NCBI RefSeq assembly: GCF_011386835.1
Contig: NC_088794.1
Location: 2,852,001 to 2,916,000, forward strand
Direction of reading: 5' to 3'
Origin: Chrysemys picta bellii
Lineage: Eukaryota
Length of the DNA stretch: 64,000 nt
In this document: piece by piece, positions 12,093-61,800 of the stretch
Layout of the letters: the number at the start of each line of letters is the position of its first letter
How positions within the stretch are numbered: position 1 is the stretch's first letter
Notes under the pieces: generated by a model
Seen by the model: the letters and a program-made list of their open reading frames with translations, nothing else
Databases searched by the model: none
What the model was told of the DNA's origin: nothing
Made by a program: the position numbers and the translations under genes

Positions 12093-12098
12093 AATAAA
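12093..12098 (+). terminator. MYL11 polyadenylation signal (copy 2 at 39562-39567)
   Basis: AATAAA ~280 bp after the stop, followed by a GT-rich tract (tgtcctgtcctgtcctgttg). Confidence 0.7.
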
Positions 12099-12289: not shown

Positions 12290-17717
<5,428 letters not shown>

Positions 17718-19327: not shown

Positions 19328-20288
19328 CGTATTAGGAAAGAGACACCGAGTGCCCACAAAACATTGAGAGTCGTGGAAAGCCGTGGAAAGGGTACTTGAG
19401 AGAGCTCCGAATTCTGCTCACAGGCAGAAAATCAACCCTTGTGCTTTACCCAGACCCCCCACTTTTGCCACCGTCACCCAGACCGAACCCCAAGGAAACG
19501 GCACTTCCGCACCGTGGCGCACAGACGTGTCCGCACGCCGCTCTCAGATGGTGGCTCGGGCCTGTTCCCCCACTACTGAAACTCACGGGCCTCGTGTGCC
19601 CTGCGCTGTGACGTCAGGCTAGCTCCAATGCCTTCGTCGCTGCAAAACCGCACCCCGTTTTAGCCGCGAGGAACAGGCCTGTGTCTGCATCCCACAGACA
19701 GAAAATACACTGGACACACCTGGCTTCTCCTGCTGTGGGACCGCGTCAGCTCCTTTCCCAAATCCTCAGCGTCGGCGCCAAACGCAGCCCTCACAGCAGA
19801 CAGGCACTGCTCCTGCGGGGGCCGAAGAGCCGCTCGTGGGACCCGGCTGGACTTTTCCCTCCTCCCGAGACCTGACTGGCTCAGGCCTCAGGCGAATGAG
19901 CAGGACGGGTGGGAGCTGCCAGAGAGATGGCCCACAACAAAACCTGGCCATGGAAATACACACCCACACCCACACCCAGACAAAAGCATGGGTGGGACCT
20001 GCCAGCCCCCTGGGCGTTTCTGGGGTCCCGACAGCCCCCCGCTCTGCGCAGCTGCACACACGGGGTTGGCGTGAGCACCAGCTCACCAGCAGTGTCGCAG
20101 GCGATGGGTGGCTGCTGATGGCGGGGGCACAATGGCAGGGCCCCCCCTCGCCATCACAGCCATGCTCAGCTTCTTGGGGACGGCCAGGGCACCCTCCAGC
20201 AGCACCCCGGGCGGGCGCCCACCCTCAACGCCCACACAGCCTGGATCGGCCATAGGGAAAATGGTGCCCTGGCCCCCGCTGGCCCCCT

Positions 20289-20788
20289 NNNNNNNNNNNN
20301 NNNNNNNNNNNNNNNNNNNNNNNNNNNNNNNNNNNNNNNNNNNNNNNNNNNNNNNNNNNNNNNNNNNNNNNNNNNNNNNNNNNNNNNNNNNNNNNNNNNN
20401 NNNNNNNNNNNNNNNNNNNNNNNNNNNNNNNNNNNNNNNNNNNNNNNNNNNNNNNNNNNNNNNNNNNNNNNNNNNNNNNNNNNNNNNNNNNNNNNNNNNN
20501 NNNNNNNNNNNNNNNNNNNNNNNNNNNNNNNNNNNNNNNNNNNNNNNNNNNNNNNNNNNNNNNNNNNNNNNNNNNNNNNNNNNNNNNNNNNNNNNNNNNN
20601 NNNNNNNNNNNNNNNNNNNNNNNNNNNNNNNNNNNNNNNNNNNNNNNNNNNNNNNNNNNNNNNNNNNNNNNNNNNNNNNNNNNNNNNNNNNNNNNNNNNN
20701 NNNNNNNNNNNNNNNNNNNNNNNNNNNNNNNNNNNNNNNNNNNNNNNNNNNNNNNNNNNNNNNNNNNNNNNNNNNNNNNNNNNNNNNN
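20289..20788. other. Assembly gap (500 N) between the duplicated blocks
   Basis: Run of exactly 500 N. Confidence 1.
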
Positions 20789-27100: not shown

Positions 27101-30100
27101 CCCTCTAGGGGGCGCCGGCTCCAGCCCCAGGGCGGGACCGGCTGGCTCAGGGGATGGGACACGGGGCCTTGCCCTCTAGGGGGCGCCGGCTCCAGCCCCA
27201 GGGCGGGACCGGCCGGCTCAGGGGATGGGACACGGGGCCTGTCCCCTCTAGGGGGCGCCGGCTCCAGCCCCAGGGCGGGACTGGCCGGCTCAGGGGATGG
27301 GACACGGGGCCTGTCCCCTCTAGGGGGCGCTGACTCCAGCCCCAGGGCGGGACCGGCTGGCTCAGGGGATGGGACACGGGGCCTGTCCCCTCTAGGGGGC
27401 GCCGGCTCCAGCCCCAGGGCGGGACCGGCTGGCTCAGGGGATGGGACACAGACCTTGCCCCTAGGGGGCGCCGGCTCCGATCCAGCTCAGGAAAGGGACT
27501 AGGAGGTTCTGGTGCAATGGAGGCTCCCCCCCGTCACTCACCCATGGCCTCCCCTGGCGGCAAACATCTCGTGGAAGGGGAACTGCCGGTGCAGATCCTT
27601 TTCTATCACATCCAGCCACTTGGGGTCCCCGGGCTGGCGCTCCAGCTCCTAGGAGTCACGGGGACAGGGGTGAGACTCTGCCCGTCACCCCCCTGCCTCT
27701 CCCCGCCCCCCAAAACCACCCCGGAGGGGGAGGCCACGCACCTCAAATTTGCTGGGGTTCTGCTCCAGGAGCTCCTTGCTGTTCGACAGCAGCTGCCAGG
27801 CTTTGGCACGGAGAGACGAGGGGATCCCCTTCCGACAGCGCAGCTTCACCTGCCAAACAAGAGCCCCTGTGTTCGCACCGTGCAGCGCCCCCTGCTGGGG
27901 GGGAGCCAGCGCCCCTCGTCCTCCCCACAGCGCCCCCTGCTGGGGGGGGAGCCAGCGCCCCTCATCCTCCCCACAGCGCCCCCTGCTGGGGGGGAGCCAG
28001 CGCCCCTCGTCCTCCCCACAGCGCCCCCTGCTGGGGGGGAGCCAGCGCCCCTCGTCCTCCCCACAGCGCCCCCTGCTGGGGGGGAGGAAGCCAGCGCCCC
28101 TCGTCCTCCCCACAGCGCCCCCTGCTGGGGGGGGGGGGAAGCCAGCGCCCCTCGTCCTCCCCACAGCGCCCCCTGCTGGGGGGGGGGGGAAGCCAGCGCC
28201 CCTCGTCCTCCCCACAGCGCCCCCTGCTGGGGGGGGGGGGAAGCCAGCGCCCCTCGTCCTCCCCACAGCGCCCCCTGCTCGGCGAGGCCAGAGTAGCCGG
28301 GAGCTCCCCCCCACAGCCAGCGCCCCGCCCCCTCCCCACAGCCAGCGCCCCGCCCCCTCCCCACAGCGCCCCCTGCTGGGACAGGCCGGGCTGGAGCAGC
28401 CGGAAGCTCCCCCCACAGCCAGCCCCCCGCCCCCTCCCCACAGCACCCCCTGCTGGGCGAGGCCGGGGCTGTGGAAGCTACTCACCTTCTGGAATCGCCG
28501 CGAGAGCCATTTATCCCAATGGGAAAACATATCAAGCCATTTGAGCTCCCGCTGCCGCGCCACGTCCACCGGGATGGCGCTCTCCCTGCGGGGGGGGGGC
28601 AGGAGAGAGGGGATCAGAGACACGGCGCAGCCACACCCCACCGGCCAGGGACAGCGAGCTTCCCCACAGCAGTGCCCTGGAGAGAGAGCGGGGCTGTGGC
28701 GCTGGGAGCTTCCCCACCCAGAGGAGGACAAGGGAGGGGACAGGGGGGCAGGAAGGAGACTACCCCCGCTGGGGTACGTCAGCTCCCAGCCTGCAACGGG
28801 AACTGGGGCCCGATCAAGCCATCTAGGTTGTTAGTAATTATAATAGGGACCTCGGCTTCCCCTCACAGCCCTGCCGGTGCCCCTCACTCCCGACCCGCAG
28901 CCCCTGCTAGCCCAGCCCTGCCCCCCCAGCTCTGCCAGTGCCCCTCACTCCCGACCTGCAGCCCCTGCTAGCCCAGCCCTGGGTTCCCCTGCCCCCCAGC
29001 TCTACCAAAGCTCCATCCCAGGGATGTGATGGGCGGGCTTGACTGCGAAGTGAAATTAACAAGGCCCAGAGTGAAACAGACCAGCCCAGTTTCCATTCCC
29101 CTGGCAGGAAGAAGGAAACACGGAGGGGCCCAAACGATTCTGTGGCCGATTGAGCCAGGAAGATTCTGCTCCAGCCCCGCAGCAGCAGCCCCAGAGCTCT
29201 CAGTTCCCACTTCAAAACCCCTCGTGCTGCTGCTTCCCAAGCAGCCCCCCGCCTCTTCCGCTGCGCTGTCCTCTTCCCTGAGCCCTGCAAAGGGGGAGAC
29301 CCAGCCCCAGGCGGGAACCGGCTGGCTCAGGGGGAAGGGGAATGGGACGCGGAGCCTTTCCCCTCTAGATGAAAACCGTGGAAGCTATCCCAAGCTGATG
29401 CCTTGGCATGTGATGAGTCTGCTGGGTCTCAGCCAATGCGTCCCCAGCCTCTCCATTCCCTCCCCATGGGTGATGACCAGGCCCCCCAGCAGCCTCACCA
29501 GACAGGCCAAGGGCAGAACAGTACATGGAGGAGGCCCTGGGGTATGTGTGTGTGTGGGGGGGACAGACTGAGCTCGGACTCCACAGGACCTGGGTAGGGA
29601 GTGGATGGGCGGGGGGAGGGCGGAGAAACAGGAAGAGCAGGGAGGGGAAACAGGAAGTGGTGGCTTGGGGCTGCCTCATTGAGAAACTCAGGAAGGGAAG
29701 CGGGGGCGTTCGCATGAGCACGGGGCGGGGGGAGGGAGATGTGGGGAGATGCCCCTTCTACGCCATCTCCCCCCACTGCAGAGCTGTGTCTGGAGGGTCT
29801 GTCTCCCTGCACGTATCAGCCCCTCCCCACCCTAAGTCTCTCCCCCACGGCCCAGCCCCCGCAAGGCCCAGTCTCTCCCCCCACGGATCGGCCCAGTCTC
29901 CCCCACCAGCATCAGCCCCTCCCCACCCAAGCCCCATACACACACCCAAGTGTCCCCCCATATCTATACCTGGGCCCAATATCCCTACCTCTTCCCCCGG
30001 CCCCCGCTCAGTCCTTCCCTAACAGGCCCAGGTTCTGCTCCGCACCCCCTCTGATCTGGCCCCTCATCCTGGTCTCTCCCCGCTCCCTTCCCCGCCTGGA

Positions 30101-32044
30101 TCAGCCGCTCGGCCCAGCCACTCTGGTCTTGCCTTCTCCCCTCCCCTCGGACTCCCCAACCCGGTTTCCCCTGCCTCCATATCAGCCCCTGGGCCTAGCT
30201 TCCAACACCCTGGCTCCTCCACTCAGTCATCCCCTCCCCGCCCCTGGACCAGCACACAGCCGCCAGGGACTTGGCTGCATCACGGGGCAGGCCCTGAGCC
30301 CCAGGGATGGGCTAGATCCCAGCCAGCGTGGAAAGACACTTACTTCAGTCAAGCCACCCATGTGCCGAGCGGGCCAGGTCTCGGCTCCCCCCCCACCCCC
30401 CCGCCCCCGACTCTGACCAGGGCTAGTTTGTGGGGGGCGAGGGGAGGCAGGACTGGGTGGAGAGAGGGGGCCGGGCGGGGGAGTGATCTCAAGTTCCCTA
30501 GGAGTTTTGTTTCGGCCTGGGAGGGGGATGGAGGGACAGAAACTCCCAAGGACAGGCTCCAGGCGTGGCTCCCCCAGGGCGAGATGGGGCTGGGCGGGGA
30601 GGCTGAGGCCTGAGGAAGGCACAGGAGATGGGTCGGGAGAGCAGGAAATACCCTTGCTCCAGGCACTCCCTCACCACAGCTCTCGGCCTCTCTGCTGAGG
30701 CTGCCAAGGCTGGGCCGGGCAGCACCAGCGGGCCCTGTGCGGAACTGGGCTGAGACCGCACACACTCGCTGCCTGTTGGGGACTGTGAATGGGGGTCAAA
30801 GGGGAATGGCCGTCTGACCCTGGGAACAGATGGGAGCTGGTGCCCCCTAGAGGGGAAAGGGCCTGGGTCCCATTTCCCACCCCCGTGAGCCAGCCAGTCC
30901 CCTGCCCTGGCGCCAGACTGGAGCCAGCGCCCCCTAGAGAGGAAAGAGCAAACGTGATGGGGGGCAGCTCAGGTACTCACGGCATCCCCGAGTGCTGGTT
31001 GCCCCCCAAGAAGCCATATTTGTCTGTTCTGCGGTAGGCCAAGCCATTGATCTCCGAGTCCGAGCCCAGGGAGCTGACGTCGTCCAAGAAGCCGGGGCCA
31101 CTCAGGGACTCCAAGGTGCCCGACATGAGGCTGACCGAATCCAGGTAGCTCAGGGTGTCTGGAGCCGGTGGGCGCCTGGGAGGTGGGATTCCAGGACCCA
31201 GGCTGGACTGCGACCCCATGTCCTGGGAGGCGGTGGACTCCAGGTCTGCAGGCCCCTCCGTCGCAGTGGGAGAGCTCTTCTCCGGTGCCACCGGGCTGGG
31301 CGCCACCACCACCAAGGCCGGCGAGGGGAAGGGCGCCGGGAGGGGTTTCACCGGGGTGCGCGGGGCTGCGGTTTCCATGGCGGGAGACGGCGTGGGAGAG
31401 GCCGCCGCCGTGGTGACCGTTTCCTTGGGACCCATCGCCATGTCGGCCCCTGCCATCTGCATCGTTTCTGTGGAAACCATCCCTGTGGTGGCCGCTATGG
31501 TGGCTACAGGTGCCATTGCCACAGGAGACGCCACCGGATCGGTGATGTTGCCCGTCGGCCCCGGACACGCCGTCCCGCTGCTCGTCGCCGCTGCCACAGT
31601 GCCGGTTGCCGGTGCCACGCTGCCCGGCGACGCCGTCGCGTTGCCTAGAGACGCCGCCACATGGCCTGTAGCTGCCGGAGACGCCGCCAGGTTGCCTGGA
31701 GATGCCGCCACAGTGCCGGTTGCCGTCACGGTGCCGGGAGACACCGCCCCACTGCCCGCCGCCGCCGGAGACGCCGCCCCGCTGCCCGTCACCAAGGCCG
31801 GGCTGCCTGTCGCCGTGGGAGACGCCGCCCCGCTGCCCGTCACCGCCGGAGACGCCGCCCCGCTGCCCCGAGCCGCCGCCCCGCTGCCCCCGGGCCCGGG
31901 CGAGGCCGACGGCGCCGTGGCCGGGGGTCTGGGTGCCAGCGGGGTTGGCGTCGCCATGGCGCTCATCTTGGCGGCGTAGAGCGCCGAGCGGGGGGCGTTG
32001 TACCGGGGCGGGGGCGACGGGGCGTCGCCAGCCCCCATCTCCAT
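21154..32044 (-). CDS. TBC1D10B: TBC1 domain family member 10B (Rab-GAP), copy 2, all 9 coding exons (three +1 frameshifts as assembled)
   Basis: Exons 30981-32044, 28486-28585, 27742-27849, 27542-27648, 26650-26764, 25550-25615, 25042-25233, 22845-22999, 21154-21844, all GT-AG. TBC motifs [10 protein letters not shown] and YCQAQ; C-terminus [10 protein letters not shown]...QDTYF. Confidence 0.93.
21980..22581. mobile_element. hAT-type non-autonomous DNA transposon in TBC1D10B intron 8
   Basis: 14-bp TIRs caggggtgggcaaa / tttgcccacccctg; 8-bp TSD ccctagtg / ccctactg (1 mismatch). Confidence 0.85.
23090..24980. repeat. 1.9-kb degenerate (GGATG/GGTTG/GGAT)n simple-repeat array in TBC1D10B intron 7
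   Basis: Continuous tggatggatggttgggttgg-type sequence that produces spurious W/G/M-rich ORFs. Confidence 0.9.
26805..27478 (+). repeat. 72-bp minisatellite in TBC1D10B intron 4 with CTCF-like motifs
   Basis: About 10 units; cctctagggggcgc recurs at 72-bp spacing (26961, 27033, 27105...). Confidence 0.85.
27881..28460 (-). repeat. CTCF-motif minisatellite, TBC1D10B intron 2, copy 2
   Basis: About 11 copies of gcgccccctgctgg or variants. Confidence 0.85.
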
Positions 32045-32244
32045 GGCGACAGCGGGCTCCTCCCCCCCCGGCCCTGCGGGGGCGGCCTAGTGGCCCCCAC
32101 CGAAGCCTGGGCTGGAGTGATGGGGGAGGGAGGCGGAGGCAGGAGCCTCGCTGGGTCTCTGCCTCAGCCCGAGCATCCAGCAACCAGAAGCCAGGGCGCC
32201 CCCCCCCAGGCGGCGCGCGCAGCCCGGCAGTGCCACGTGGGAAG

Positions 32245-32990
32245 GCGGCCAATCCCAGGCCGGGAGGGCAACCGGGCCAGCCAATTAGAAGGGAGGAGGG
32301 GGAGGGTTGTGGGAGGGAGGGTCCGAGTGGGCGGGAGCGGCTCTGGGATGGGCCAGTCAGGGCAAGGAAGGTCGGGGTTCCGGCCAATCGGGGAGATGGC
32401 GATCAAACGAGGAAGGGCGGGTGAGAGAAGGGCTGGGGCGACGGGGCGGGCCAGTGGGGATGTGGCCAATCAGAGCAGAGGTATTGCCCCAGCCGCCCAA
32501 TCGGAAGGTGAGGTTAAACCAATCAACACAGAGACGGGGGAGGCGGATCTAACGCGACATTTAACCAATCCTAGGAGGACCGGCGTTATGTCAACCAATT
32601 AGCGGCAAGAAGGGTCGCAGCTCAACCAATCAGTGTCGGGGACACCTCCAGCTTTCACGGGCAGCCCGAGCGCCTTGTCTGCCGGCCAATAAAACATCGT
32701 AGCGGGAAACTGATCGGCGACTCCTCGGACCAATGAGCGCAGACTTAGGGCGGGAGTGGCAGGCTCCTCGACAAATGGACACCCAAGAGCGGGCAGCTCA
32801 GAATGGGGCGGACTCCGCCAAGGGGGAGGGACCGTTGATGACAGTTGGGCGGTTGATTGGCGGTTGTCTCAACCAATAGGAGAGGGGGGCTGGCGGAAGG
32901 GGCAGCCAATGGGAAGGGAGGCGGGGAGGGGGCCCAGCAGCAGCCAATGAGGAAGGGAGGGGGAGGGGCCTAGCAGCAGCCAATGGGAAG
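32245..32990 (-). promoter_or_regulatory. TBC1D10B CCAAT-rich promoter, copy 2
   Basis: Homologous to 4750-5490. Confidence 0.65.
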
Positions 32991-35069
32991 GGGGCTGGGG
33001 GTTGGCCGAGTTGAAAAGGATTCTGGGAGTTTGGTCAAGTGGTGCTAACCCAGCTGGGGGATGGGAAGGAACCAGGTCTCCTGGGTTCTCTCCCCGGCTC
33101 TGGGAGGGGAGTGGGGTCTGGTGGGTTGGAGCAGGGGGGGCTGGGAGTCAGGACTCCTGGGTTCTCTCCCTAGCTTGGGGGAGGGGCGAGGTCCCAGGCT
33201 TTCTTAGCAGGTGTTGCCCATGGGGGGGAATTAGAGTCACATGAGGTGAAATGGCAGGTCCCGGGGGGGGGGGGTTCACCCATGGGGGTGGCAGAAGGGG
33301 GGGCGGGGGAGTGCAGCAGCCCCTGGAAACATCCCAGTGCCTTTCGGGGTTGGGGGTGGGGTGCAGGGTTGGCTCAGCAGGGCCTGTAGGAGCCCCTGGG
33401 GATGGGGCTAACCTGCGGGGGCGGGGATGGCCCCTCCTCCCACTGGACACTTCTCCTCTTCCTGACTTTATTCTTTTCTCTTTCGCATGGATCAAGGACC
33501 CCCCGTTTCCCCCCGGCCGCTTCCCATCCTGTCTTCGTATGCGAGGGCTGGGGGTCAGGACTCCTGGGTTCTCTGGGAGGGGAGTGGGGTGAGAGTGCGG
33601 GGTGGGACAGGGACCCCGAAAAAGCTGATTGTGCTTCCTGTTTATAACCGTAACACACGGTTGCCCCCCCCCCTTCACCTCCATGAGTGTTCACTCTGGA
33701 CCCTAAGGATGGCCATTGCATCATTTGGAGCCTGTTTGCAGAGTCCTTTGGCAGGGAGATTCAGCCTGCTCTGGGATTGGAGGTGGAACTCTGAATTGTG
33801 GGAGGGGCTTATGCACAAGATTCCCCTCCCCGTCAACTTGCCCCTCAACCCATCCCACCTGGTTTATCCAGCTCGGTCTGCCCCCCTCCCCTGTACCAGC
33901 CTTGGCACATGGGGCAGGTGGTAGATCCCTATGTGTGTTGGGTGCAGGGCACGAGGCTGGCCCCTAACCAGGGATCGGTGTGCCGTTGGGGTGGGGAGGG
34001 CCGCCCCAGGGCTGGGCAGATGGCGTGAGGGCTGCCAAGTTGTCGGTGGCTCGGAGGAGACAGCTGGTGCCGCCCGTCTTGAGAAGGAAACTTTCTCCAG
34101 GACGCCCAGATAGCCAGGGACAGTGAGAGGGATATGGCGCACACAGGACAGTCCCACACAGTCCCTGCCCCAGGGCACGGACACCCCACTAGCCCATTCC
34201 CACCCAGAGGCAATCTGCCATGTCTGTCCATCCCCCCCACATCCCTCTATTTATCTCTCCCTCCATCTGTGTCCCTCTCATGGAGATACAAAACAGAGGC
34301 CAAGCAGTGGGGTGGGATGGGGTCACCCCATAGTGGGGACCCTTATTGGGGTGACACAAATGAGAGCAACAGGAGAGATTCAGAGTTCAGGAACCGGAGC
34401 CTTGGATCTTGTAGGGGGGCCCATATTGGGGTGCCACACATGGAGACGCAGAGCTGGGAGGCCCATATGGGGGGCAGATGGGGCAGGAGCATGAGATCTG
34501 GATCTTTTGGGGGGATCCTTATTGGGGTGACACACAGAGGAGAAGCAGATGGGACGAGAGAGGGGGATTCATAAAGATGTGACTCAGGGGGCAGCAGATG
34601 ATGCAAAAGTGGGGGGACCCATACTGGGGGTGACAGTGGGGAGCAGGTGGGGCCGAATATTGGGGTGACACCCGAGGGGCAGCAGAGGGGGTGAATGGGG
34701 CAGAAGCAGGTCAGGGAAGCTGGATCGACTGAGGCAGACTCTATGTTGGGGCAAGACATGGGGTCGGGGGACCCTATGGGGGGGTCATGTGGGGCAGCCT
34801 GGGGGCCAAGCAGACTGGAGGGATCCCACCTCTCCTGTCTCCTTTCTCCAAGAAAGGAGCGGCCCAGCCGGGATCTATTTCAAGCCCTGGGCTCCTCCGA
34901 GCCAAACTTGAAGATGCTGCTATAGTTAGCCCTTGGCACGTCACCCACCCCCCCGGCACCCCCCGGGAGCTCTATATAACCCCAGGGGGATTGGCAGGGC
35001 TCCCCAGCCTGCCCAGCTTCCCCCGCCAGCAGAGACCTCCCAACAGCTGCGCCCGCCCGCTGAGAGGAG

Positions 35070-35373
35070 ATGGTAAGTGAGACGGACACAGGCAGACGGA
35101 CGGACCCCGGGGAATTGAACTGAGATCCCCACACATACACGCCGCGGCTTTGGGACACTCGGACCCGCCTGTGGAAAGCTACAGTGTGGAGAGAAATTAC
35201 CAAGGGATCAATCGATATATCTGTCCCCACACACACACCCTACCTACCTACCTACCTATCCCCATCCACCCCATCTATCTATCTATCTATCTATCTCCGT
35301 ACACCCCTGCTATCTATCTATCCCCACACACACCCTCTATCTATCTATCTAGCTAGCTAGCTCCGTACACCCC

Positions 35374-35417
<44 letters not shown>

Positions 35418-38400
35418 CCATACACCTCCTCTATCTAATCTATCCCCATAAACCCCTCTCATCCATCCATCTATCCCTGTACACTCTATCTATCCATCCC
35501 CACATACACTCCTCTATCTTTCTAGCCCCATCCCCACACTCCTCTCTCTCTAGATCCATACACCCCCTATCTAGCCATCCATCTATCCAACCCAGTCATC
35601 TATCTATCCCCCTCATCTCTATCTACCCATCCATCCCCCCACACCCCCTCCCTCCTGCACCTGTCCGTCTCCAGGCATCCCCCTAAGATGGCTCAGGCAT
35701 GTCCTACTCTCCTGCAGGTTTTGGGGGTCACTTCTATCCGGGTCCCTTCCCCCGCGATTTCCCCATGCCATAAGGGTGCTCTGGGTATGGAGGGGGGGAG
35801 AGATGGAGTCCGATGCACAGACAGACGGCGCTTGGGCGCCCATCCCGACCGGATCTCTGTCCCCTTCCACCGCCCTCCCATCGCTGAGACTGTGAGGTCA
35901 TCTGGGTCCCGACACCCAACTGAGCCATGGTGGCGCCATCTGGGGGGGAGCACAGAGCCAAAAATTAATCCCTCATGTGTATTGGGGGGCATCAGAATCT
36001 GTGTCCCTGAAGTATCGTCCAACCCTAGGGCTAGACTCTTGGGGAGCCCAAACCTCTCCCTCTAGCCTGGGAAAAACACCCCACCTTTGACTTAGGGCCA
36101 GCTCCCCCAAGGGGAAAAAACTGGGATAGCCTTGTTATCCACTGGGGGACTGTTACCCCCTCACAATAGACACCCCATCTCATAACTGCCCCTAAACACA
36201 GCTGAGGCCCCCCACTGGCATTGCTTAACAGGTGTTTCCCCATGCACCCCCATTTCCCCCACTAACTCCCATGCACCCCAATTTCCATGTGCCCCCACTA
36301 ACTGCTGTACATCCTATTTCCCCCACTAACTCCCATGCACCCCAATAACTCATATGTACCCCTATTTTTCCCACTAACTCCAATATATTCCACAATAACT
36401 GCTGTGCACCCCAATTTCCCCACTAACGCCCGTGCACATCCCAGTAATTCTCATGCACCCCCAATAACTCCCATACACCTCTCAATGTCCCCCATGCACC
36501 ACAATTCCACCCATATCTCCCCTGCACCTCCTTCTAGCCCCCCAATATTGCACACTGCACCCCAATTCCCTCGCTAGCTCCCATGCACCCCCAATAACCC
36601 CCACTTCTCTAGGTTCACCCCAAGAGCTCCCCCAGTCCATCTCTTGGGCTCTGCACCCACTGATCACAGACAGGGAGGATGAGGGTGATATGGGGCACCA
36701 GACCTATGTCCAGGGCTCAGATCTGGGGGCAGGGGGAGGGCATGGTGGCTCATGGCACGGCCTGTCTGCTTTTCTTCCCCTCCACTCCCCCCCTCCCCCA
36801 AAAAAAACCTCAGGCACCCAAGAAGGCGAAGAGGAAGGCAGCCGAAGGCAGCTCCAATGTCTTCTCTATGTTTGACCAAACCCAAATCCAGGAGTTCAAA
36901 GAGGTGAGGAGGAGGAGGTAGGGTGGATGAAGGGCAGGGAGGGGTGAGGGTGGGGGTAAGATTGGCCCCTCCAGTATAGTCCCCTGTCTCCGGGGGGCGG
37001 GATCATCCCACCAAACCTTGATGTTCTAGGGTGGGGTCCAGGGCTCCGTCTCCCCAAGTCCTCCTCGCTCCCACGACTCCCCGAAATGACCCCGCCTCAC
37101 CCAATCCGACAGAGAGATGCCTCCCCGCTGCGTCCTTCTCCCTGGGGGCGGCCGTCTCCCCAGCTCCCATCCCTCCCGGCACAGACGGGGCCGTTTCGTT
37201 CCCCGGATCCTGAGGGCCGGGCGTCTATTTTGGGGGTTGGAGGGTGGAGACACGACATCTGTGATTGGGTTGGAGGCGCCTTACAAGGAAATCCCTGGAG
37301 ACGTGGAATTGGGGGAGGGAGGGGTGCCAATGGGGCATCTCCATCTTTGCTGCGGGGTAGCTTCCCTCCCCCCCCAGTCTCTGGAGAGCTCGTCAGTTCC
37401 TCCGGCATGCAGCACCTGTCCCCCACGGGAGGGGGGCTGCGTCGGGACGGGGGCATGCCGCCAGAGGGGGATTCCTGGCGTTCCTTCCGTCCCCGAGGAG
37501 CCGGGAACAGGGGCTGGGTGACAGGTGTCTCTGGGGGAACAGCTGCAAGGGGGGGCAGTGGGGGGAGGCCGGGCTGCAGAGATCTATACGGCCCTTGGCA
37601 TCTCTCCATTCCCATGATCCTTTGCTCTTCTCCCCCTTAGGCCTTCACCGTCATTGACCAGAACAGAGATGGCATCATCGACAAGGAAGACCTGAGAGAC
37701 ACATTCGCTGCCATGGGTAAAGAGGCGGGGCCAGACCATGGTGGGAGGGGCTTATCTGGGTGGGAGGGGCCATTCCAAGTGGAGTGGGTTCTATCTGGGC
37801 AGGGAGGGACCTGTTCCAGGAGAGGGGGATGGGATTCCCCCCCCCCACTTTATAACCCTCCCCCCCGTTGGCAGGGCGCCTGAACGTGAAGAACGAAGAG
37901 CTGGACGCCATGATTAAGGAAGCCAGCGGCCCCATCAACTTCACCGTCTTCCTCACCATGTTTGGGGAGAAGCTCAAGGGTGAGTGACTCCCCACCATCC
38001 GGCTTGGTACATCCCCCTCTCCCCTCATCGAGCTCCCCTTTGGTATGCCCCCATCCTCTTGGCACATTCCCATAGCCCCCCATTATGTCCTCCTTGGTAC
38101 ATCCCCATCTCCTCTCATCCTGCTCCCCCTTGGTACATCCCCATTTCCTTCCCCTGCTTATGTCTCCATCTTTTCTCCCCCAACTTCCACCCTCACCCTC
38201 TGACACATCCTCATCCCCCCCCATCACATATCCATCCTGCTTCCTGTTACCTATTGGTACATCCCATCCCCCCAATCACAACCCCATTGGTACATCCCAT
38301 TCCACCCAACCCACTACCCATTGGTACTTCCCATCATGCTCCCCAACCTGCTATGCATTGGTACCTCCCATCCTCCCATTCCCTCCCCATTGGTATGTCC

Positions 38401-39284
38401 CATTACCGCCCCATCCCATCCCCCCTTAGCCTCTCCCCTATTGGTACATCCCATCCTCCCATTCCCTCCCCATTGGTATGTCCCATTACTGCCCCATCCC
38501 ATCCCCCCCATTCACTTCCCCATTGGTACGCCCCAGCCCCCCAATTCTCGCCCTCTCCGCCCCCCCAGGTGCTGACCCCGAGGACGTGATCATGGGGGCG
38601 TTCAAGGTGCTGGACAGCGAGGCCAAAGGCACCATCAAGAAGCAGTTGTGAGTATCCCTGTCCCCAGCAGGGGGCGCTGGGGGTGAGCATGGGGGGTCTC
38701 CCCGGGGCAGGGGGCGCTAGGGGTGGGTGTGGGAGTCTCCCCTAGGCAAGGGGTGCTAGGAGTGACCCCGGTCCTGAGAGCGCACAGGGAGGGGGGTCTC
38801 CATAGCAGAGGGCGCTCTCCCCAGGGTGTGGGGTGTTGGGGGGGGTATGCCAGGGCTGAGAAATCGGGGGTGTCTCCCCAGAATTTGGGGTGTCTGATCG
38901 CCACTCTCTCTCTTCCCCTCTCACAGCTTGGAAGAACTTCTGACCACCCAGTGCGACAGATTCACCCCGGAAGAGGTGAGAAATTTGGGGGTGACCCCCT
39001 GAACCCCAATACAAACCCATCCCCCCAATCTAACCCATCCCCCCAGATCATCCCATCCAACCTGATCCCTCCTGCAGCAGCAGTGGGTGGGGTCTGGGAT
39101 CGAGGGGCACAGACCCTAGTTTTGGGGGTGGGGTCACCCCAATTTTAACTCCCCTCTTGCTCCTGTCCCCCACCCCCAGATCAAGAACATGTGGTCAGCT
39201 TTTCCTCCAGATGTGGCTGGCAATGTGGACTACAAGAACATCTGCTACGTCATTACACACGGTGAAGACAAAGAAGGGGAGTAA
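35070..39284 (+). CDS. MYL11: Myosin regulatory light chain, fast skeletal, copy 2, intact 168 aa
   Basis: Exons 35070-35072, 36814-36903, 37641-37716, 37875-37979, 38569-38647, 38927-38975, 39180-39284. Protein appears identical to copy 1. Confidence 0.95.
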
Positions 39285-39759
39285 ATCCAGCAGGCGTACC
39301 CAAATTCCCCTGCCCCCCCATCCAGGGGGCTGGCGCTGTGGGGTCCCATCCACTCACACCCCCCAGGTTGGGGGCATCTCCCCCACATGACGCCAAATCA
39401 GCTTCAGTTTTGGACCCCCAAACTGCAGATGCCACTCTTATTTATTGTGATTTTGGGGTGGGGAGCTGGGACCCCACAACCTTGCCCTTCCCCACCCTGC
39501 AGCCAGAGTCTTAAGAAACTGATCAGGACCCGTGTCAAGAATTGAGAAAAAAAAAAGTCTCAATAAAGATGAGGAAACCTGTTTTTAACTCTTTCGGTGT
39601 CCTGTCCTGTCCTGTTGCGACTGCTTCTGGAGTGGAGCACAGTGGCTGTTTAGATAGGGATCAAGGTGGGCTAATGAGGTGGCAGTGGTTGAAATCCTGG
39701 CCCCACTGAAGTCTGTGTTTGTTTTCCTATAACTTCAGTCAGGTCAGGATGTCACAGCA

Positions 39760-42175
<2,416 letters not shown>

Positions 42176-42941
42176 TTACCTGCAACTGCCACTCGGTGGA
42201 GTCCGGGAACCAGGGGCAGCTGGACAGAGAGCTGGAGCAGGACACACGTCCGGGTGTGGAAGGAGCAGGGGTGTGGGAGGGGCTGGCCAGGAGGTGGGAC
42301 TGGCCAGGCAGGGCGGGGGTCTGAGAAAACACCTAGGATGCACTTCACACAGAGTATAAACGGCTTCCCCCCGAAAGGGGCCGCGTCCCAGCGCCGGGCA
42401 AGGGGTCCCCATGTGCCCAACCCCACCCCCACCCCCCAGAGCCAGCCGCATCCCAGCACCAGGCAAGGGGACCCCATGTGCCCAGGCCCCGTCCCAGAGG
42501 GGCCACGTCCCAGTGCCAGGCGAGGAGTCCCCATGTGCCCAGCCCCCCCTCCCCACCCCAGAGGGGCCATATCCCAGTGCCAGGCGAGGAGTCCCCGTGT
42601 GCCCAGCCCCCACCCCAGAGGGGCCACGTCCCAGTACCGGGCGAGGGATCCCCATGTGCCCAGCCCCCTGACTCCACCCCAGAGGGGACACGTCCCAGTA
42701 CCGGGCGAGGGATCCCCATGTGCCCAGCCCCCCGACTCCACCCCAGAGGGGACACGTCCCAGTACCGGGCGAGGGATCCCCATGTGCCCAGCCCCCCGAC
42801 TCCACCCCAGAGGGGACATGTCCCAGTACCAGGCAAGGGGACCCCATGTCCCATCCTCCAGAGATAGCAAATTCTGGCCGATGTGGGTGTAAAAGACATT
42901 TCAGAAGCTACATAGCAGATGCCTCCGAGTCCAAAATTCAC

Positions 42942-44966
42942 CTTTTTGCTCTCCACAGGAGTGTCCATTTTGCTCTCCACGGGGGAGTGCAGCGTTACGG
43001 CCTTTCTCCCCTTCTGGCACTTCACACATCGCTCCACCTAGTTGGGACGGAACCACACGACGACATTAACGTTCTCGTACAACAGGACAATCGCACGGGA
43101 AAGGTGGTTACATTTTCACATTTCAGATCGGCACGGCCACGGCCCGTGACGTGGAGCAGGGTTTGGTTCCGTTACAGACCCACTCGACGATGTCCTTAGT
43201 CATCCCAGGCCAATAGTATTGGGTGGTCAGCGAGGTTCCTTGGTGCCCACCCCGGGGACCCCCGTGATGCTGTTCGAAGAGCTGCAGGGCTTGTTCCCTC
43301 GTGTGCACCACGACGACCTTTCTCCCTTTGCCAGTATGGAAAAGCGTCCCGTCTGCGGATCAGAGACGAGGGGGACACTGATGAGGAGAGAAGCAATTAT
43401 CAGATATTTTCAAAGTCACTGGCAGGGCCGTCCTTAGCTATTCTGGGGCCCTACGCAGCCCCCCTGTGGGAGGGTGTGGGGGGGCAGGCCTCCGTGGGGG
43501 GGGAGGGGGCTGGCTTGGGGAGCAGGGGGGCCCAACCCAGCTGCAGAGCTCAGGGCAGTGGGGGAGGGGCTGGGGCAGAGCAGGGGTGGGAAGAGGCGGG
43601 GGCGGAGCAGGGTGGGGGCTTTGGGGAAGGAGTGGAGTGGGGATGGGGATGGGGCGGAGCAGGGTTGGGAAGAGGCAGGGCAGGGGCAGAGCAGGGTGGG
43701 GGCTTTGGGGAAGGGGTGGAGTGGGGGCGGGGCTGTGGCAGAGCAGGGCGGGGCCATGGGGAAGAGGCGGAGCAGGGGCTGGAGCAGCACGCAGCAATGT
43801 GGTGCCCCAAATCCCCTGGTGCCCTATGGAGCTGGGGAGAGGCAGCCCCGCTCACCGGTTCATTATAAGTAGGGCCACGCTTTGGTCATGGAGGTCACAG
43901 AATCCGTGACTTACAAAGGCCTCCGTGACTTGAGCACCCAGGAGCTCGGAGCAGCTGGGAGCCACAGGCAGGGGGATGCCCCACAGCTCCCAGCCGGGCC
44001 CCAGGGGTGGTGTGGAGACCCCACAGCTCCCCATTTTGTCGAGCCTATTTTCAGTAAAAAACAGGGATAGGTCACAGGCTTCCATGAATTTTTCTTTATT
44101 GCCCGTGACCTGTCCGGGACTGTTACTAAAAATACGTGTGACAAAATCTTAGCCTTAATTATAAGGCATCTGCATATGGAAGATATCTGAACACTGTCTG
44201 GCTCGTCACGGCTTGAATACAACGTGGGGCGGGAGGAATTTCAGTAGCTGGTTATAATTAGATGTTGAAATGTTTTTTAAACTAGATATCCTTGCTCGAG
44301 GAATGTCTGGGGATTGCTGTTGTTTGTCGATACCCTGGATCACCTACTTGAGAAATAAAGTTAAACCATAGGGGTTTGTTTGGTGCTATTTATCATTTAT
44401 GCTCCTGTGCCGTGTAACTGACACACACGTTTGTTACGGCGCCCACGTGTGGAGCACAGGGCATGTTCTGGGAAATGTGAAAAAACCCTAACCGTGGTCC
44501 CAGTCGGTCAGGTGAACGCTCCAAAGAAACCCAGTCTCGGGGCATCGGGACCATAAGTTACATGCCGAAAAGTCCATTGTATTCTGTGTGGGTATTCCGT
44601 GAAAAAAAGGATTGCTTGCCTTCCAAAGAAAAGTTGGCAGCAAATCGATGCAGATTAAGTCTGCCGGCTTTATTCACTCCTTCAGGATACTTGTTTCTTC
44701 TCTTTAATGCCAACACCTGGGCGATTTTTTCCTCAAAGGATTTCCCTGAGTACTGTTCACAGAAGCTAACATTTACATAATGGCAAACATGCACTATCTA
44801 GCCATATAACAATCGGATTTTATTTTGTAGGTAAACTTGTGGCCATATAACCAGGGTAAGCCAAACTCAACGACGCAGCATTCATAGAGTGACACAAGTC
44901 AATTTGAACTACATGTCTACGTTTGGAGTATTTGTGGCTTACAAAGTCTGGCTGCCTTTGATCCAT
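42942..44966 (-). CDS. GIN1/Ginger-like integrase H2C2 zinc-binding-domain exons, copy 2, open 142 aa
   Basis: Exons 44943-44966 (tentative), 44620-44752, 43180-43352, 42942-43037. Spliced product: [142 protein letters not shown]. Confidence 0.78.
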
Positions 44967-46699
44967 GGAAATCGAATTGCATTTGAAATCATGAGATCGC
45001 CTATAAGATTTTAACCAAATAACGTCAGAGTAAATTTCAAGGCAGGAAATTTAACTGCCCAAGAATGTGAATTTCACCAGCAGGGGTGTTTGAAGACACT
45101 GTTCAGAATAGAGAAACCTCCTTCCCCGCCATACTGATGTTGATTACAGGGAGGTTTTGGCCTCGTACAGCTTTTTTGGCAAAACCCGTTTCTGGAAATG
45201 CTGAAGAATCGGAAATAAAGCAGCGCGTGTCACATACACGGCTCAGCGTCACGCTGATCACACGCACGACAAACATGTGAAAAGCACAAAGGGGCTTTGG
45301 AGGTTTTGTGAACGTACTTAGCCGGGGGACCCTAAATCTTTGACTCCGTCAGACGTCTATTGCAGGGCGCACAGTGTACGTGGGCTCACCGGAGAATGGG
45401 GAGCAGAGACACTCGAGGAGTTAAGCCCAAGGTTAGTAGCCCACTCTTGTATGGGCTCACAAAGCCTGTGTTATCTTTGGGAGGGGGTCCCCAGAGTGCA
45501 ACCCGGACTATGGGACCCCTGACCCCTCCCAACCCACCAGCCTTTCACACTGTCCCTCTCTAAGGGGTCTCGGGGAGAGTGGATCATTTTCTGATTGACC
45601 ACCCACGCCCGTCTGGCCGGCCTGCGCTGCTCCTTTGTTTGGACTGAAAGGCTGGTGCGGGCGTTCCCAACCTCACAACACACTTTGGTAGCAGCTCTTG
45701 GCAATGGTAGAACCTCAGAGTTACAAACCCCCAGGGCCTAGGGAAGGGAGGTTGTTCCGACCTCTGAACCGTCCCCAACTCTGAACCAAACGGTAGGGTT
45801 TGTTCCTTCAAAAGTTTGCAACTGAACATTGACTTCTACCGCTTGGAAACTTTCCTATGCCGAAGCAAAATGCTGCTTTCCCTTTCTTTGTGTTCCACAC
45901 AGTATTGTTCTGTGTTTGCTTTTTTGGGCCGGGGTGTCTCGGCTGCTGCCTGATTGCACGCTTCCCGTTCCAAATGAGGTGTGTGTGGTTGGCCAGTCAG
46001 TTCATAACTCCGGTGTTCGTGACTCTGCGGTTCGACTGTATTCATAACTTCCCATCCAACGACAGCACACACGATCCAACAGGATAGCAACGTTCAACCC
46101 AGCAAGAGTTTAAACAAGAGCCCTCACAGGGCAGGCGTTGTACCAAACCTCTCATCAGCATCTCACTGTGGTGGAGCCTTTACTCACAAAAGCATCTCAC
46201 TGTGGTGGACCTGGGGGCTACGTGCAGGTACACAGTGGCACAGCCTTTACTCACGAAATCCGAAGTGACACTTGAGCTGTGACAAGCTACTTAGGTGACG
46301 TCATCCCAGTACTTAGGAGATAACACTTGAGAAAAAGCAACTTTGTGGAGCGGAGAGGACCTGGCCCCCATGTCTGTGTTTTCAGGACTGCTCAGAAAGT
46401 ATTCTACAAGCCCAGTTTCAGGGCTAGTGGATGTAAAACGCTGAATGAACATCTGAGTATTCCTTTATTACTCCTTTCCACTGCAGAGTAGTGACCAGAC
46501 AGCAAGTGTAAAAAATCGGGGTGCGGGTGGGGGGTAATAGGAGCCTATACAAAAAAAAGCCCCCAAAATCGGAACTGTCCCTATAAAATCAGGACATCTG
46601 GTCACCCTGCGTATTAGGAAAGAGACACCGAGTGCCCACAAAACATTGAGAGTCGTGGAAAGCCGTGGAAAGGGTACTTGAGAGAACTCCGAATTCTGC

Positions 46700-47726
46700 T
46701 CACAGGCAGAAAATCAACCCTTGTGCTTTACCCAGACCCCCCACTTTTGCCACCGTCGCCCAGACCGAACCCCAAGGAAACGGCACTTCCGCACCGTGGC
46801 GCACAGACGTGTCCGCACGCCGCTCTCAGATGGTGGCTCGGGCCTGTTCCCCCACTACTGAAACTCACGGGCCTCGTGCACCCTGCGCTGTGACGTCAGG
46901 CTAGCTCCAACGCATTCCTCGCTGCAAAACCGCACCCCGTTTTAGCCGGGGGGGCAGGGCTGGGAGAGGGGCTGGCGCTGGGGGGGGGGGCAGGGCTGGG
47001 GGAGGGGCTGGCGCTGTGGGTGCGGGGGGCAGGGCTGGGGGAGGGGCTGGCGCTGTGGGTGCGGGGGGGCAGGGCTGGGGGAGGGGCTGGGGGTGCGGGG
47101 AGCAGGGCTGGGGGAGGGGCTTGTGCTGTGGGTGCGGGGGGGCAGGGCTAGGGGAGGGGCTGGCGCTGTGGGTGCGGGGGGCAGGGCTGGGGGAGGGGCT
47201 GCTGCGGGGGGGGGCAGGGCTGGGGGAGGGGCTGGCACTGGGGGGCAGGGGGCACGCACTGATAATAGCGGGGCGGGGGGCTGGCCAGGTTCCCCTCCCC
47301 CGCAGGGGTTGCAGGTGGGGTGACCAGACAGCCGGACGGGGGGGGGGGGGGGCAATAGGAGCCTATATAAGAAAAGGACCCAAAACTCGGGATCTCCGCT
47401 CACCCCAGGTGCAGGGGGTGCAATGGCTCCTGCCCCGCCCCCGCTCAGACCCCGCCCCCTCGGCTCAGACCCCGCCCTCCCACGTGCCACCCGCTCGGCG
47501 CGGGCACGAGACTCGCACTCCCGGCAGGGGCCGGGCAGTCGCGTCAGCAGCGTCACTGCGCATGCTCGGTACAAACTCGGTCCCCTCGCGCCCCCCTCCC
47601 GTTGCCTCGGGCACCCTGATTAGCTGCGCCGCCGGTCGGGCAAGCCCATTGGTCGGCCAGGGCGGGCGCCCGCTCTGATTGGCTGGAGGGGCGCGAGGCG
47701 GCGCGGTACCGGGGCTCGAAGGAGGC
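46700..47726. promoter_or_regulatory. CpG-rich, probably bidirectional promoter between the integrase-like/QPRT unit and DCTPP1, split by a G-rich ~38-bp repeat (46949-47250)
   Basis: CRE TGACGTCA 46891-46898, NRF1-like TGCGCATGC 47557-47565, ATTGG at ~47648 and ~47678, GC boxes. Confidence 0.55.
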
Positions 47727-58834: not shown

Positions 58835-61800
58835 TGGAAGAGGAGGTTATGTACCTGTAACTGGAGGTTCTTCGAGATGGGCGGTCCCGATCTGTATTCC
58901 ATGGAGGGCCGTGCGCCCAGAGCCGGAGAATTTGAAAGTAGCGTCTGTTACGACTGCATCTCCAGTTCCTTCTCCACTGCAAATCTAACAGCTCCATGGC
59001 AGAGGGGAAGGAGGGCGGAGTTGGAATCCAAATAGGGGACAACACATCTCCAAGAACCTCCAGTTACAGGGAAGTAACCTCCTCTCCTTCTCCGAGCGAT
59101 GGTCTCTATTGCGTTCCGCTCAGGGCGATGACCAAGCAGTGCCGAATTCAGAGGAGGGTGTGAGGAAGAGGATGGAGGCCCGCCGAGACCTCGCACCAAG
59201 GCGTGTGCCGAACTCCGCATGGCCGCTCGACTGTGACACTCTGTACCCCAAAGCAACACCCTGGCACCCCCATATTGACAGGGCAATGGGATTACGATAT
59301 GGTTTGTACAGTGCATGCCTTGTGAGGTAACCCTTTAAAAGTCTTGATCTGTTGATCATTAACACCCTGTTGGATGGTGTGAGCTGTCCCTGGATGGGAA
59401 GTTATGAAGTTTTGCTCTGTGTGTGTGACTGAAATATGTTGTGAGGTTGGGAACACCCACAACCAGCCTTTCAGGTGCAACAATGGAGCAGCCAGACGTG
59501 CTGGTGGCCCATTAAAGGAATCCACACTCCCAAGGACTGTTGTAGGAGCTGTATACAATGGAGACTTCTCAGAGAGAGCACGTGGACAATGGAAGCTGCT
59601 TGACTCACGTCATAGCAAAGGGTCTTTCCAGAGAGCTGGAAGAGGGGAAATGACATCATCACTTGGCCTCACCCCCCCTCACCTCCAACTGAACACCTGG
59701 AAACACGTCTGGAGAACAAAGACTGAACTGGGGCGGGGGGCCTAGGCTGGACAGGAGAATACCAGCCTGCGTAGTAAGGAACTAGACCATCAGGGTGAGA
59801 CACGGCTTGATTCAAATCCTGTCTAGTTTATAGAACTCAGGTTGCGATTTGACGTTTACTTCTTAGGAAACCGACTTTGATCTGTGCGCTTATTACTTAG
59901 AATCACTTCACACCCGTCTGTCTGTAGTTAATAAACCCGTTTTATATTTTACCTAAAGCAGTGGGCTTTGGTTGAAGTGCTTGGGAGATCTGCTCCGGAA
60001 CCAGAGCTGGTGCATGTCCTCTCCGCATTGAGGGAGGGGTGGACTGGGTAATGAACTCGCACCGGCCAGGCTTCTGAGCAGGGCAGGACAGCACAGCCCT
60101 GGGGTTGTAGGCTGGGGATCTGGGGGCGAATTGGCTGGATCCCCTCTATTGACAGTTCACGAGTGGCTGGGAGATCAATCACATAACTCAGCTGGGTGTG
60201 TCCCTGGCGGGGTGAATGCAGGACCTGGAGGGGTCTGCAGCTTGTCACAGCATCCCAGTGTGAGAGGGAGCCCAGGTTGGTGGGACAGAGGGCTCAGCGG
60301 TACCCCAGTTCCAGGCTGCACCCCAGGGAACCCGTCACACCGACATACGTCCGAAAGCGGCAGGTCGCACAGGGTGGCTGTAGTTGGCACTCGCGCGCTT
60401 GAGGAAAGGGGCCCTCACCCCACGGGGTGGAGACCATCCTGACAACCGATAGAGCCGAACGCCCCCCAAATGCACTTAGAAACCCTCCATGTGGAGACTG
60501 TTTAGCGCCAGAACCGAAAGGATCATGGGGCGGGCAGTCTAGGGGACGTCCGGAAAGGTCTTGTCCTCTGCAGGTGGAAGGCCAGGGCCTGGTGGACGTC
60601 GAGGGAGGGAAGGCGCCGCTCCTCCGCCAAGGCGGGAGGCTTCGGAAAGAAGCGGATGGGCTGGTTGAGCTGAAACCGGGGGATGACCTTTGGGAGAAAC
60701 TCGGGGTGCAGGCGCCAGGAGGCTTTGGGGGGGCCCCCCCTCCCGGCCCCCCGTTCACCGACCTGTCTTGCGGAAGGAATTGCTCCAAGGAAGTGCGATT
60801 TCATTCACATCGCGCGGACGAGGTTGAGGTCCCGCAGGGGCGTGATGGGCGGGAAGGTTCGGAGCAGATCTGGCCGTCAATGGCTGCGTACGGATGGACG
60901 GACGGCGTGTCCGCGCACAGGGGGGCGAAGGGTGCTGAGAGCCGCTAGGTGGACCGTGATGGGACGGAGAGCAAGTCCTGACATGGTCAAGCATAGAGAA
61001 GGGGCACGTTCATGTCGTCGGGGGGTGTCGGGCCCAGGAGGTGAAATGCTTCCACTTGTCCGGACAGGAGCCTGGTGGACGCCTGCCTGCCGCTCGAAGG
61101 TACGTCTTGTGCTGCCGACGAACATTCCCGTGCGACACGGCCTCCCCGAAGCGTGGGGATATTGATGTGCATTCTGGATCCCCGAGAGGTCCAGGTCCCA
61201 TGTGGGCGCCGAGGCCGGCGAGCAATGTGCCCGTGACGATCGTGTCCAGAGAAGACAGGAGGAAAGGCATCACGTGCCTGGGGACCGTCTACCACTGGAG
61301 CGAGGAGAACACCTCCGGTGGGGGTGGGGGAGACGACAGAAAGCCCATGGTCTGTCGCACGGGTGAACCGGCTCTCCGGAGTCACAGCTGAAGACAGCGA
61401 AGGCAGAAGCGAGTGAAGATGGTGACTGACGTACGTGTGGCCAAGGAGGGATAGGAAGGTCCTGACCGGAACAGAAGGACCATTGATTACTCAGGTGACG
61501 AGTTCCCGCAGGGTCTGGAACCTGTCCCTCACCAGGTCGACCCGTGCCGAGACCACATCGATGGAGGCCCCTGTGATATCCAGGGACCATGTGGGAACTG
61601 AAGTCGATTTTTCGACACTGACACTCGTGTCCAGGGGAGGAATGGCAGCGTCCTCGGATCGCGCGGCTAGCAGCCAGTGGTCGAGGGAGGGGAATCTAAA
61701 GACCCTGTGATGCCAGCGGTGGGTGGCTACGACAGAGGAAACTTTGGGGAAGACCCGTGGAGCAGGGGTGAGTCCAAAGGGTAGGACCCTGGATTGGAAG

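Follow-up and report, generated by a model that had tools for sequence, protein, structure and literature searches.

Ginger1 transposons encode a YPYY motif, an H2C2 zinc finger, a DDE core, a GPY/F motif and a C-terminal Ulp1 or OTU domain, and their genes contain one to four introns, one of them of the GC-AG type (Bao, Kapitonov, Jurka 2010, PMC2836005). The elements carry terminal inverted repeats of 40-270 bp with TGTNR ends and are flanked by CCGG or CCGT target duplications; in Ginger1-5_HM, which has been placed closest to GIN1 and GIN2, the GC-AG intron is the first one (PMC2836005). Transposase exons have also been joined to host genes, and the catalogue of Cosby et al. (10.1101/2020.05.07.082677) comprises 94 tetrapod host-transposase fusions, among them turtle fusions and the Ginger-derived KRBA2. 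Here, we describe four exons of the painted turtle Chrysemys picta bellii that encode the N-terminal module of a Ginger1-type integrase and are located between DCTPP1 and QPRT, the gene of quinolinate phosphoribosyltransferase. They were found in a stretch of 64,000 nucleotides (NC_088794.1, positions 2,852,001 to 2,916,000, in the following called the window). We consider it probable, at about 80%, that these exons are a transposon-derived front end of QPRT, be it as a host-transposase fusion or as an exonised fossil.

Exon structure and splicing into QPRT

The exons were determined by translating the three reverse frames and reading the splice contexts, and all their coordinates refer to the minus strand (slashes denote exon borders):

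45126-45276, minus strand: exon A', the ancestral first coding exon (MFVV...SMAG), within an open reading frame (ORF) at 45103-45276, aligning to the N-terminus of the Gopherus protein P0146
44966-44943, minus strand: exon A of the original prediction (MDQRQPDF), donor TTT/GTAAGC
44752-44620, minus strand: exon B, the region of the YPYY motif, ending with FSLE, acceptor ACAG/TAC, donor GAAG/GCAAGC
43352-43180, minus strand: exon C, a beta-hairpin region and the His-His half of the zinc finger, acceptor CCGCAG/AC, donor TGG/GTCTGT
43037-42942, minus strand: exon D with the Cys-Cys half (CVKCQK), acceptor CTAG/GTG, donor AAG/GTGAAT
42180-42320, minus strand: linker exon E, 141 nt and 47 codons, Pro/Ser-rich, stop-free, not transposon-derived
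41132-41692, minus strand: first coding exon of QPRT (exon F), canonical ATG at 41683, in frame with exons A-E

Spliced in silico with the phases 0, 1 and 0, exons A-D result in exactly 142 codons, so that the exon structure predicted originally from the bare sequence was reproduced from the splice contexts. The intron after exon B is of the GC-AG type. All motifs listed at that time are present in the spliced frame: the KYPEG...RF..NF..TLF region precedes the HHCC finger, HHGGPRGGH and CVKC provide the two His and two Cys zinc ligands, and 24 residues separate the last His from the first Cys. Exon C alone matches the Pfam profile PF17921 (Integrase_H2C2) with 34.7 bits and an E-value of 2e-8 over positions 4-49 of 59 (the cut-off is 25.5 bits). 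This match is well beyond chance and confirms the proposed signature. Exon D contains two 24-nt TPVESK repeat units and an in-frame ATG in good Kozak context.

The connection to QPRT was examined with contigs of three small runs from two species (X16, X17, and X18) and of one DNA run, aligned over positions 41050-47000. The three runs are presumed to be RNA, and the spliced joints in their contigs argue for this. The joint from exon D to exon E (42942 to 42320) is present in contigs of all three runs and the joint from exon E to QPRT (42180 to 41692) in contigs of X16 and X17, both with GT..AG ends on the minus strand. The depth of the contigs (7.7-8.6) compares well with the values for the QPRT exon (7.7-13). 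In the in silico spliced sequence, no stop interrupts the frame of exons A-D along the 47 codons of exon E, and the frame continues in phase into QPRT. By a rough estimate such a frame would be expected by chance in about 1 of 10 cases; the annotation of other turtles, which carries the same chain, shows that it is not due to chance. In the painted turtle, exons D and E are regularly included in QPRT mRNA, most of which still contains them, and they can add an N-terminal extension to the enzyme, starting either at the Met of exon C or at the ATG of exon D.

Further upstream, RNA contigs cover exon C in X16, X17, and X18, and exon B in one of the three runs (an X17 contig spanning 44620-44787 with its end exactly at the GC donor). 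No RNA contig was found in these runs over 44831-45228, the region of exons A and A'. According to the end positions of contigs, a B to D junction skipping exon C in X17 and a branch at the exon D acceptor in X16 are possible. The Logan contig L007, which contains a QPRT ORF, is unspliced and genome-like and was uninformative on the 5' exons.

The open spliced frame of 142 codons together with the significant domain match could also denote a stand-alone, domesticated, non-catalytic gene of about 142 residues consisting of the H2C2 part only, and a self-contained hidden gene is what had been proposed. Position 42942, however, is not the end of a gene but a used splice donor leading through the linker exon into the QPRT exons, and there is no stop codon at the end of exon D. 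Searching a set of 5.8 billion proteins with the exon D peptide (region 1-40 of a 230-residue ORF) gave no match of 127-402 residues. In addition, the orthologous exons are annotated within QPRT in seven turtle species, and Carettochelys misses exons C and D. A stand-alone gene is therefore largely refuted and very improbable.

The chain is most complete in the tortoises. A search restricted to the QPRT part of a longer ORF revealed RefSeq QPRT isoforms of 495-567 residues in Gopherus evgoodei, G. flavomarginatus, and Chelonoidis, which are composed of exon A' (MFVM...SSMA), B, C, D, E, and QPRT, in this order. These isoforms contain Integrase_H2C2 (E-value of about 1e-18, 67 bits) and zf-H2C2 followed by QRPTase_N and QRPTase_C, and UniProt has automatically named some of the fusions 'Gypsy retrotransposon integrase-like protein 1'. 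Exon A' of the painted turtle is homologous to their exon 1. The painted-turtle RefSeq QPRT (P0221, 388 residues) comprises exons C, D, E, and F, and its coding sequence starts at the Met of MTKDIVEW inside exon C, as does that of Terrapene. Both models contain only the Cys-Cys half and do not match H2C2. The 24-nt repeat of exon D represents a coding minisatellite, TPVESK[M/T]D (42942-43000), whose unit number varies among turtles without breaking the frame (two units in Chrysemys, three in Gopherus evgoodei, four in G. flavomarginatus, and about six in Chelonoidis).

Origin and age of the insertion

An exhaustive HMMER search with exon C resulted in 23 matches, of which the best four are turtle proteins with 68-70% identity. 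The weaker homologs include plant reverse-transcriptase fragments, their names being uninformative, and a protein-atlas look-up returned generic integrase clusters only. At the DNA level, dispersed turtle loci are 65-78% identical to the window through exons, introns, and about 1.8 kb of upstream sequence (46777 down to 42903), and the homology to other copies of the element ends at about 42903. The dispersed copies, which form units of at least 10 kb, have identical exon ends including a G/GC or G/GT donor after exon B. The GC donor has been kept in the QPRT-linked copy of six turtles and in four of the six dispersed copies (L001, L003, L005, and L006). The position of the exon D donor is also common to the dispersed copies; P0002 and P0017 are spliced there and P0013 reads through. 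The relatives of the module are thus intron-bearing Ginger1-like copies, in agreement with the gypsy/Ginger-type integrase module with intron-separated parts that had been suggested.

The paralog P0002 contains an integrase core (rve), a Peptidase_C48 gene follows the paralog at locus L002, and all three domains, H2C2, rve, and C48, occur together in the fish homolog P0005. At the turtle locus the original prediction of a missing catalytic core was right, as tblastn searches with rve-bearing relatives did not reveal any rve-like sequence in the window. The Ulp1/OTU protease domain is likewise absent at the QPRT locus. Two further features of the fossil are:

42376-42860, no strand assigned: array of about six to eight 64-bp tandem repeats detected with TRF, within the intron between exons D and E
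45319-46777, minus strand: 5' non-coding part of the element fossil, with blastn blocks of 67-87% identity to the dispersed loci L001, L002, and L005

The tandem array occupies the site where the downstream exons of the element (the rve core and others) are missing, and the upstream part is a probable promoter or leader region. One unit of the 64-bp array is also found upstream of QPRT in Carettochelys (L008 7895-7934). G-rich tandem and short interspersed repeats have been inserted into the introns and the upstream region of the fossil (43434-43800, 44035-44233, 45627-46024, and 46423-46621), and the contig depth over these repeats is very high in all runs.

Dispersed copies flanked by terminal inverted repeats had been named as the mark of a mere transposon remnant. 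Several old paralogous copies do exist in turtles, but self-comparison of three dispersed loci did not show terminal inverted repeats, the copies being old and the 5' terminus not being reached in the alignments. CCGG/CCGT target duplications were not found either. At one of the dispersed loci (L001, Mauremys mutica CM035636.1), the element family is present as two diverged copies arranged head to head about 4 kb apart, and one of them encodes H2C2 and an rve core in which the position of the second catalytic Asp reads Gly.

In a phylogenetic tree, the QPRT-linked modules form one clade inside the turtle family with the branching order of the species tree (97/95 support). On this sequence evidence, the QPRT-linked modules represent one orthologous insertion. 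The syntenic site of Carettochelys contains a remnant of exon B (L008 7463-7561) of the same length, with 58% amino-acid identity and the GC donor kept, as well as exon E; exons C and D are not recognisable at this site. Because of this remnant, the insertion must be older than the divergence between the lineage of the soft-shelled turtles and their relatives and the remaining hidden-necked turtles. The relation to integrases extends to more distant families: the family profile matches residues 1043-1148 of the Ty3 integrase with an E-value of 1.4e-10, and the predicted fold of the tortoise module (mean predicted local distance difference test score, pLDDT, of 77) matches the N-terminal extension and HHCC domain of the Ty3 and foamy-virus (PFV) integrases.

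The locus was probably formed in the following way. In an early turtle, an ancient, intron-bearing Ginger1-like element inserted into the interval that separates DCTPP1 from QPRT. The surviving 5' part of the element encodes the N-terminal extension with the YPYY motif and the HHCC zinc finger, and the catalytic and Ulp1 exons have been lost. The transposon's own exon-4 donor was captured and now leads to the 141-nt linker exon and on to the first coding exon of QPRT in a single reading frame. The fossil thus acts as the upstream exons of QPRT, supplying a leader, probably a promoter, and a predicted N-terminal extension. In tortoises this yields the annotated H2C2-QPRT chimeric protein of about 500-570 residues with an intact zinc finger, and in the painted turtle the annotated protein, beginning at the Met of exon C, keeps the Cys-Cys half only.

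Constraint and erosion among turtles

The tortoises have a complete finger, intact splice sites, and an open frame in every exon. Exons B-D are also open in Chelydra. Caretta has two 1-nt deletions in exon C, Arg in place of the first Cys, and 2 nt inserted into exon E, and in Mauremys reevesii the second Cys has been changed to Arg. Exon E is conserved in six turtles including Carettochelys, in which it contains several indels; its length is a multiple of three and it is free of stops in five of seven sequences (both Chrysemys copies, Gopherus, Chelonoidis, and Chelydra). The module is present in two copies in the painted-turtle window, which are described at the end of this section.

Both Chrysemys copies share changes at the 5' side. 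Aligned at the DNA level, exon A' has the donor ATGGCGG/GTAAGG in Gopherus, Chelonoidis, and Chelydra, and ATGGCGG/GTAGGG in Caretta; both Chrysemys copies have GG (GGAAGG) in place of the GT of these four turtles. Furthermore, a 15-nt in-frame deletion in exon C directly follows the second His. It removes five residues from the region of the conserved G-x-x-K-T stretch, which separates the second His from YYWPG. All other turtle orthologs and paralogs possess these residues, and in the model of the tortoise module they are the first five of an 11-residue helix (84-94). The deletion arose in the emydid line, because it is not found in Platysternon, the tortoises, Chelydra, and Caretta. According to this model, the zinc finger appears to be weakened in the painted turtle. 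An intact zinc module is probably no longer made in this species, because the donor of the first exon has been destroyed, about half of the middle helix has been deleted, and the annotated protein starts inside exon C. The idea of a domesticated derivative thus does not hold for a stand-alone gene, and it is doubtful for the H2C2 part in the painted turtle given the lost A' donor, the five deleted residues, the missing RNA cover of exons A and A', and the detection of exon B in a single run.

Exon A, which had already been flagged as tentative, is not the ancestral first exon; this is 45276-45126. The sequence of exon A is conserved in all turtles compared and lies inside the ancestral intron 1. 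The ancestral acceptor of exon B is CTCAG/GG at 44745, and both Chrysemys copies have an extra, Chrysemys-specific AG (44753-44754) 7 nt upstream of it, through which alone exon A is in frame. Thus, the full H2C2-QPRT protein might still be made in the painted turtle from a rewired start, reading from ATG 44966 through exon A to the new AG, and the shortened finger might be functional. The frame of this route is exact over 142 residues and continues into QPRT, all four zinc ligands are kept, the AG occurs in Chrysemys alone, the sequence of exon A was already present in all turtles, and the Chrysemys branch has 8 synonymous and 6 nonsynonymous substitutions overall. We nevertheless regard this route as improbable. 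The region has no RNA contig in the three runs, the sole exon B contig extends unspliced for 35 nt beyond the ACAG acceptor, and the RefSeq coding sequence begins at the exon C Met. The in-frame fit is expected by chance in one of three cases, the deletion takes 5 of the 11 residues of the helix after the second His, and the constraint is concentrated downstream of the internal Met. Exon A is therefore not supported as an exon; it would be a cryptic ATG-plus-donor in conserved intron sequence that offers a possible repair of the frame.

Constraint was estimated with Nei-Gojobori counting on 132 codons of exons B-D, the pairwise comparisons not being independent, and substitutions per branch were counted by parsimony. 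The ratio of nonsynonymous to synonymous rates (dN/dS) of the module is 0.24-0.47 in six pairs among Chrysemys, Gopherus, Chelonoidis, and Chelydra, with Fisher p-values of 7e-5 to 0.02 in five of the pairs; the Gopherus-Chelonoidis pair (p 0.18) is not significant. QPRT exon F has values of 0.08-0.15. The branch counts are:

tortoise stem: 7 synonymous, 6 nonsynonymous
Chrysemys branch (all): 8 synonymous, 6 nonsynonymous
Chelydra branch: 3 synonymous, 11 nonsynonymous
Caretta branch: 5 synonymous, 17 nonsynonymous

Downstream of the internal Met, the Chrysemys branch has 4 synonymous and 0 nonsynonymous substitutions. The substitution counts suggest that moderate constraint acted on the module during a part of its history and that it has been relaxed in several lines.

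The same data can be read in two ways. The module might be a pure fossil that serves QPRT as a non-coding leader or promoter or has no role at all, all chimeric ORFs including those of the tortoises being untranslated by-products of annotation. This would fit the independent decay of the frame in Caretta, Mauremys reevesii, Carettochelys, and the painted turtle, the neutral appearance of the substitutions on the Caretta and Chelydra branches, and the canonical QPRT ATG, which is kept everywhere. However, the dN/dS values among Chrysemys, the tortoises, and Chelydra and on the tortoise stem are far lower than 1, exon E is in frame and stop-free in most sequences, and the frame from exon A' to exon E is intact in three tortoise species despite the variable coding minisatellite. 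We regard a pure fossil as less likely than not. Alternatively, the turtles, and most clearly the tortoises, might maintain a real chimeric enzyme built of a Ginger1-derived integrase N-terminal/HHCC module, a repeat-rich flexible linker, and quinolinate phosphoribosyltransferase, which would have been kept for more than 100 million years and would now be lost piecemeal in some lineages including the painted turtle. We propose this tentatively, as a possibility with less than even odds. If true, an enzyme of NAD synthesis would have obtained a handle for multimerisation or nucleic-acid binding, and a host-transposase fusion would have a metabolic partner.

Several points weigh against a transposon-derived front end of QPRT that is both spliced and translated. 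Runs X16, X17, and X18 are only guessed to be RNA and consist of contigs rather than reads, the C to D and B to C junctions are not directly seen among the joints of the RNA contigs shown, and contigs of X16 and X18 cover the intron between exons C and D. The models of the tortoises come from automatic annotation (Gnomon), and the extended QPRT protein is a prediction from gene models and transcripts. The dN/dS values come from a simple counting method with small numbers, and upstream of the internal Met the Chrysemys branch has 4 synonymous and 6-7 nonsynonymous substitutions, a constraint that is weak but not zero. Finally, the painted turtle would regain the full frame by the compensating route through exon A and the new AG.

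The window consists of GC-rich vertebrate DNA with the gene order TBC1D10B, MYLPF, QPRT, H2C2 exons, DCTPP1, a septin, and a C2H2 zinc-finger gene. The RefSeq QPRT locus of Chrysemys picta bellii (CM062321.1) is 100% identical to the window including the scaffold gaps. Within the window, 1-19666 and 27754-46948 form a 27.4-kb internal tandem duplicate with 95-98.7% identity, which carries the 5' part of TBC1D10B, MYLPF, QPRT, and the H2C2 exons. The exons described above belong to copy 2, and the other copy is:

about 15532-18041, minus strand: second copy of exons A'-D (copy 1), with the RefSeq QPRT model placed on copy 1

The duplicate may be an assembly artefact, a false (haplotype) duplication, because there is a scaffold gap (20289-20788) at its junction. 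One X16 RNA contig mixes bases diagnostic of both copies. Between the copies, exons B-D show three differences that are all synonymous, and exon C of copy 1 has in addition a 1-nt insertion. RNA contigs of X16, X17, and X18 aligned to exon C do not contain this insertion, which may be an assembly error; for the DNA run X15 the position of a single 1-nt gap could not be assigned. The all-synonymous differences in exons B-D were considered as a sign of constraint and set aside given the possible assembly artefact and the tiny count. Copy 1 also contains a single unspliced open frame of 670 codons (13615-15627, minus strand) that connects exon D, the tandem array, the linker region, and the QPRT exon and is probably a by-product of the GC richness. 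ORFs with reverse-transcriptase-like sequence at 61491-62668 (minus strand) look like a fragment of a retroelement and are unrelated to the module.

Comparison with known fusions and integrase-derived genes

The turtle copies share with Ginger1 the YPYY-type region followed by the H2C2 finger, the introns within the transposase gene including one of the GC-AG type, the rve core and Ulp1/C48 domain in related copies, and the presence of several copies per genome. In contrast to Ginger1, the QPRT locus has kept the first four coding exons only and lacks the DDE core and the protease domain, terminal inverted repeats and CCGG/CCGT duplications were not found for the turtle copies, and these are old (65-80% identical), with the same genomic position for the copies compared across species. 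GIN1 and GIN2 also have the Ginger1-type N-terminal architecture and contain introns (PMC3424704, PMC2836005), but they are free-standing genes with an integrase core, whereas the turtle module is coreless, fused to QPRT, and located at DCTPP1-QPRT-MYLPF. By sequence and position, the module is not GIN1 or GIN2 but appears to be a separate, turtle-restricted event.

Integrase-derived sequence has also been kept in the host genes NYNRIN/CGIN1 and Imagin, and amphipod Imagin resembles the turtle module in the loss of the core and the erosion of motifs (PMC12863088). NYNRIN differs in that a retroviral integrase is located C-terminal to an RNase-type host gene, and Imagin differs in being free-standing and in its dN/dS of 0.05-0.13 (PMC12863088), compared to which the turtle module (0.24-0.47) is under weaker constraint with lineage-specific erosion.

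In mechanism, the locus resembles the host-transposase fusions such as KRABINER, SETMAR, and KRBA2 (Cosby et al., bioRxiv 10.1101/2020.05.07.082677), in which transposase exons are likewise joined to the host via a transposon splice site, parental and fusion forms coexist, and the transposon part is under moderate purifying selection. Unlike in those fusions, the host partner in turtles is a metabolic enzyme of de novo NAD synthesis and not a regulatory domain, the transposon part is N-terminal and upstream of the host gene, and what has been captured is a coreless integrase N-terminal/HHCC module. QPRT does not appear in the accessible parts of the text and supplementary tables of that catalogue, and a literature search did not reveal any paper combining QPRT, integrase, and turtle. 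The chimera is visible in automatic annotation and we found no published description of it. In practical terms, the exons are part of QPRT and not a missed gene, and masking of transposable elements or views based on ORFs alone split them off.

To our knowledge, host-transposase fusions almost always combine the DNA-binding domain of a transposase with a regulatory domain. In turtles, the splice donor of the transposon has probably been captured instead, so that an integrase zinc module is joined to a housekeeping enzyme, which acts in NAD synthesis. The module ranges from an intact state in tortoises through trimming in emydids and frameshifts in sea turtles to near erasure in the pig-nosed turtle Carettochelys, and this series allows asking directly whether such fusions are adaptive or merely tolerated.

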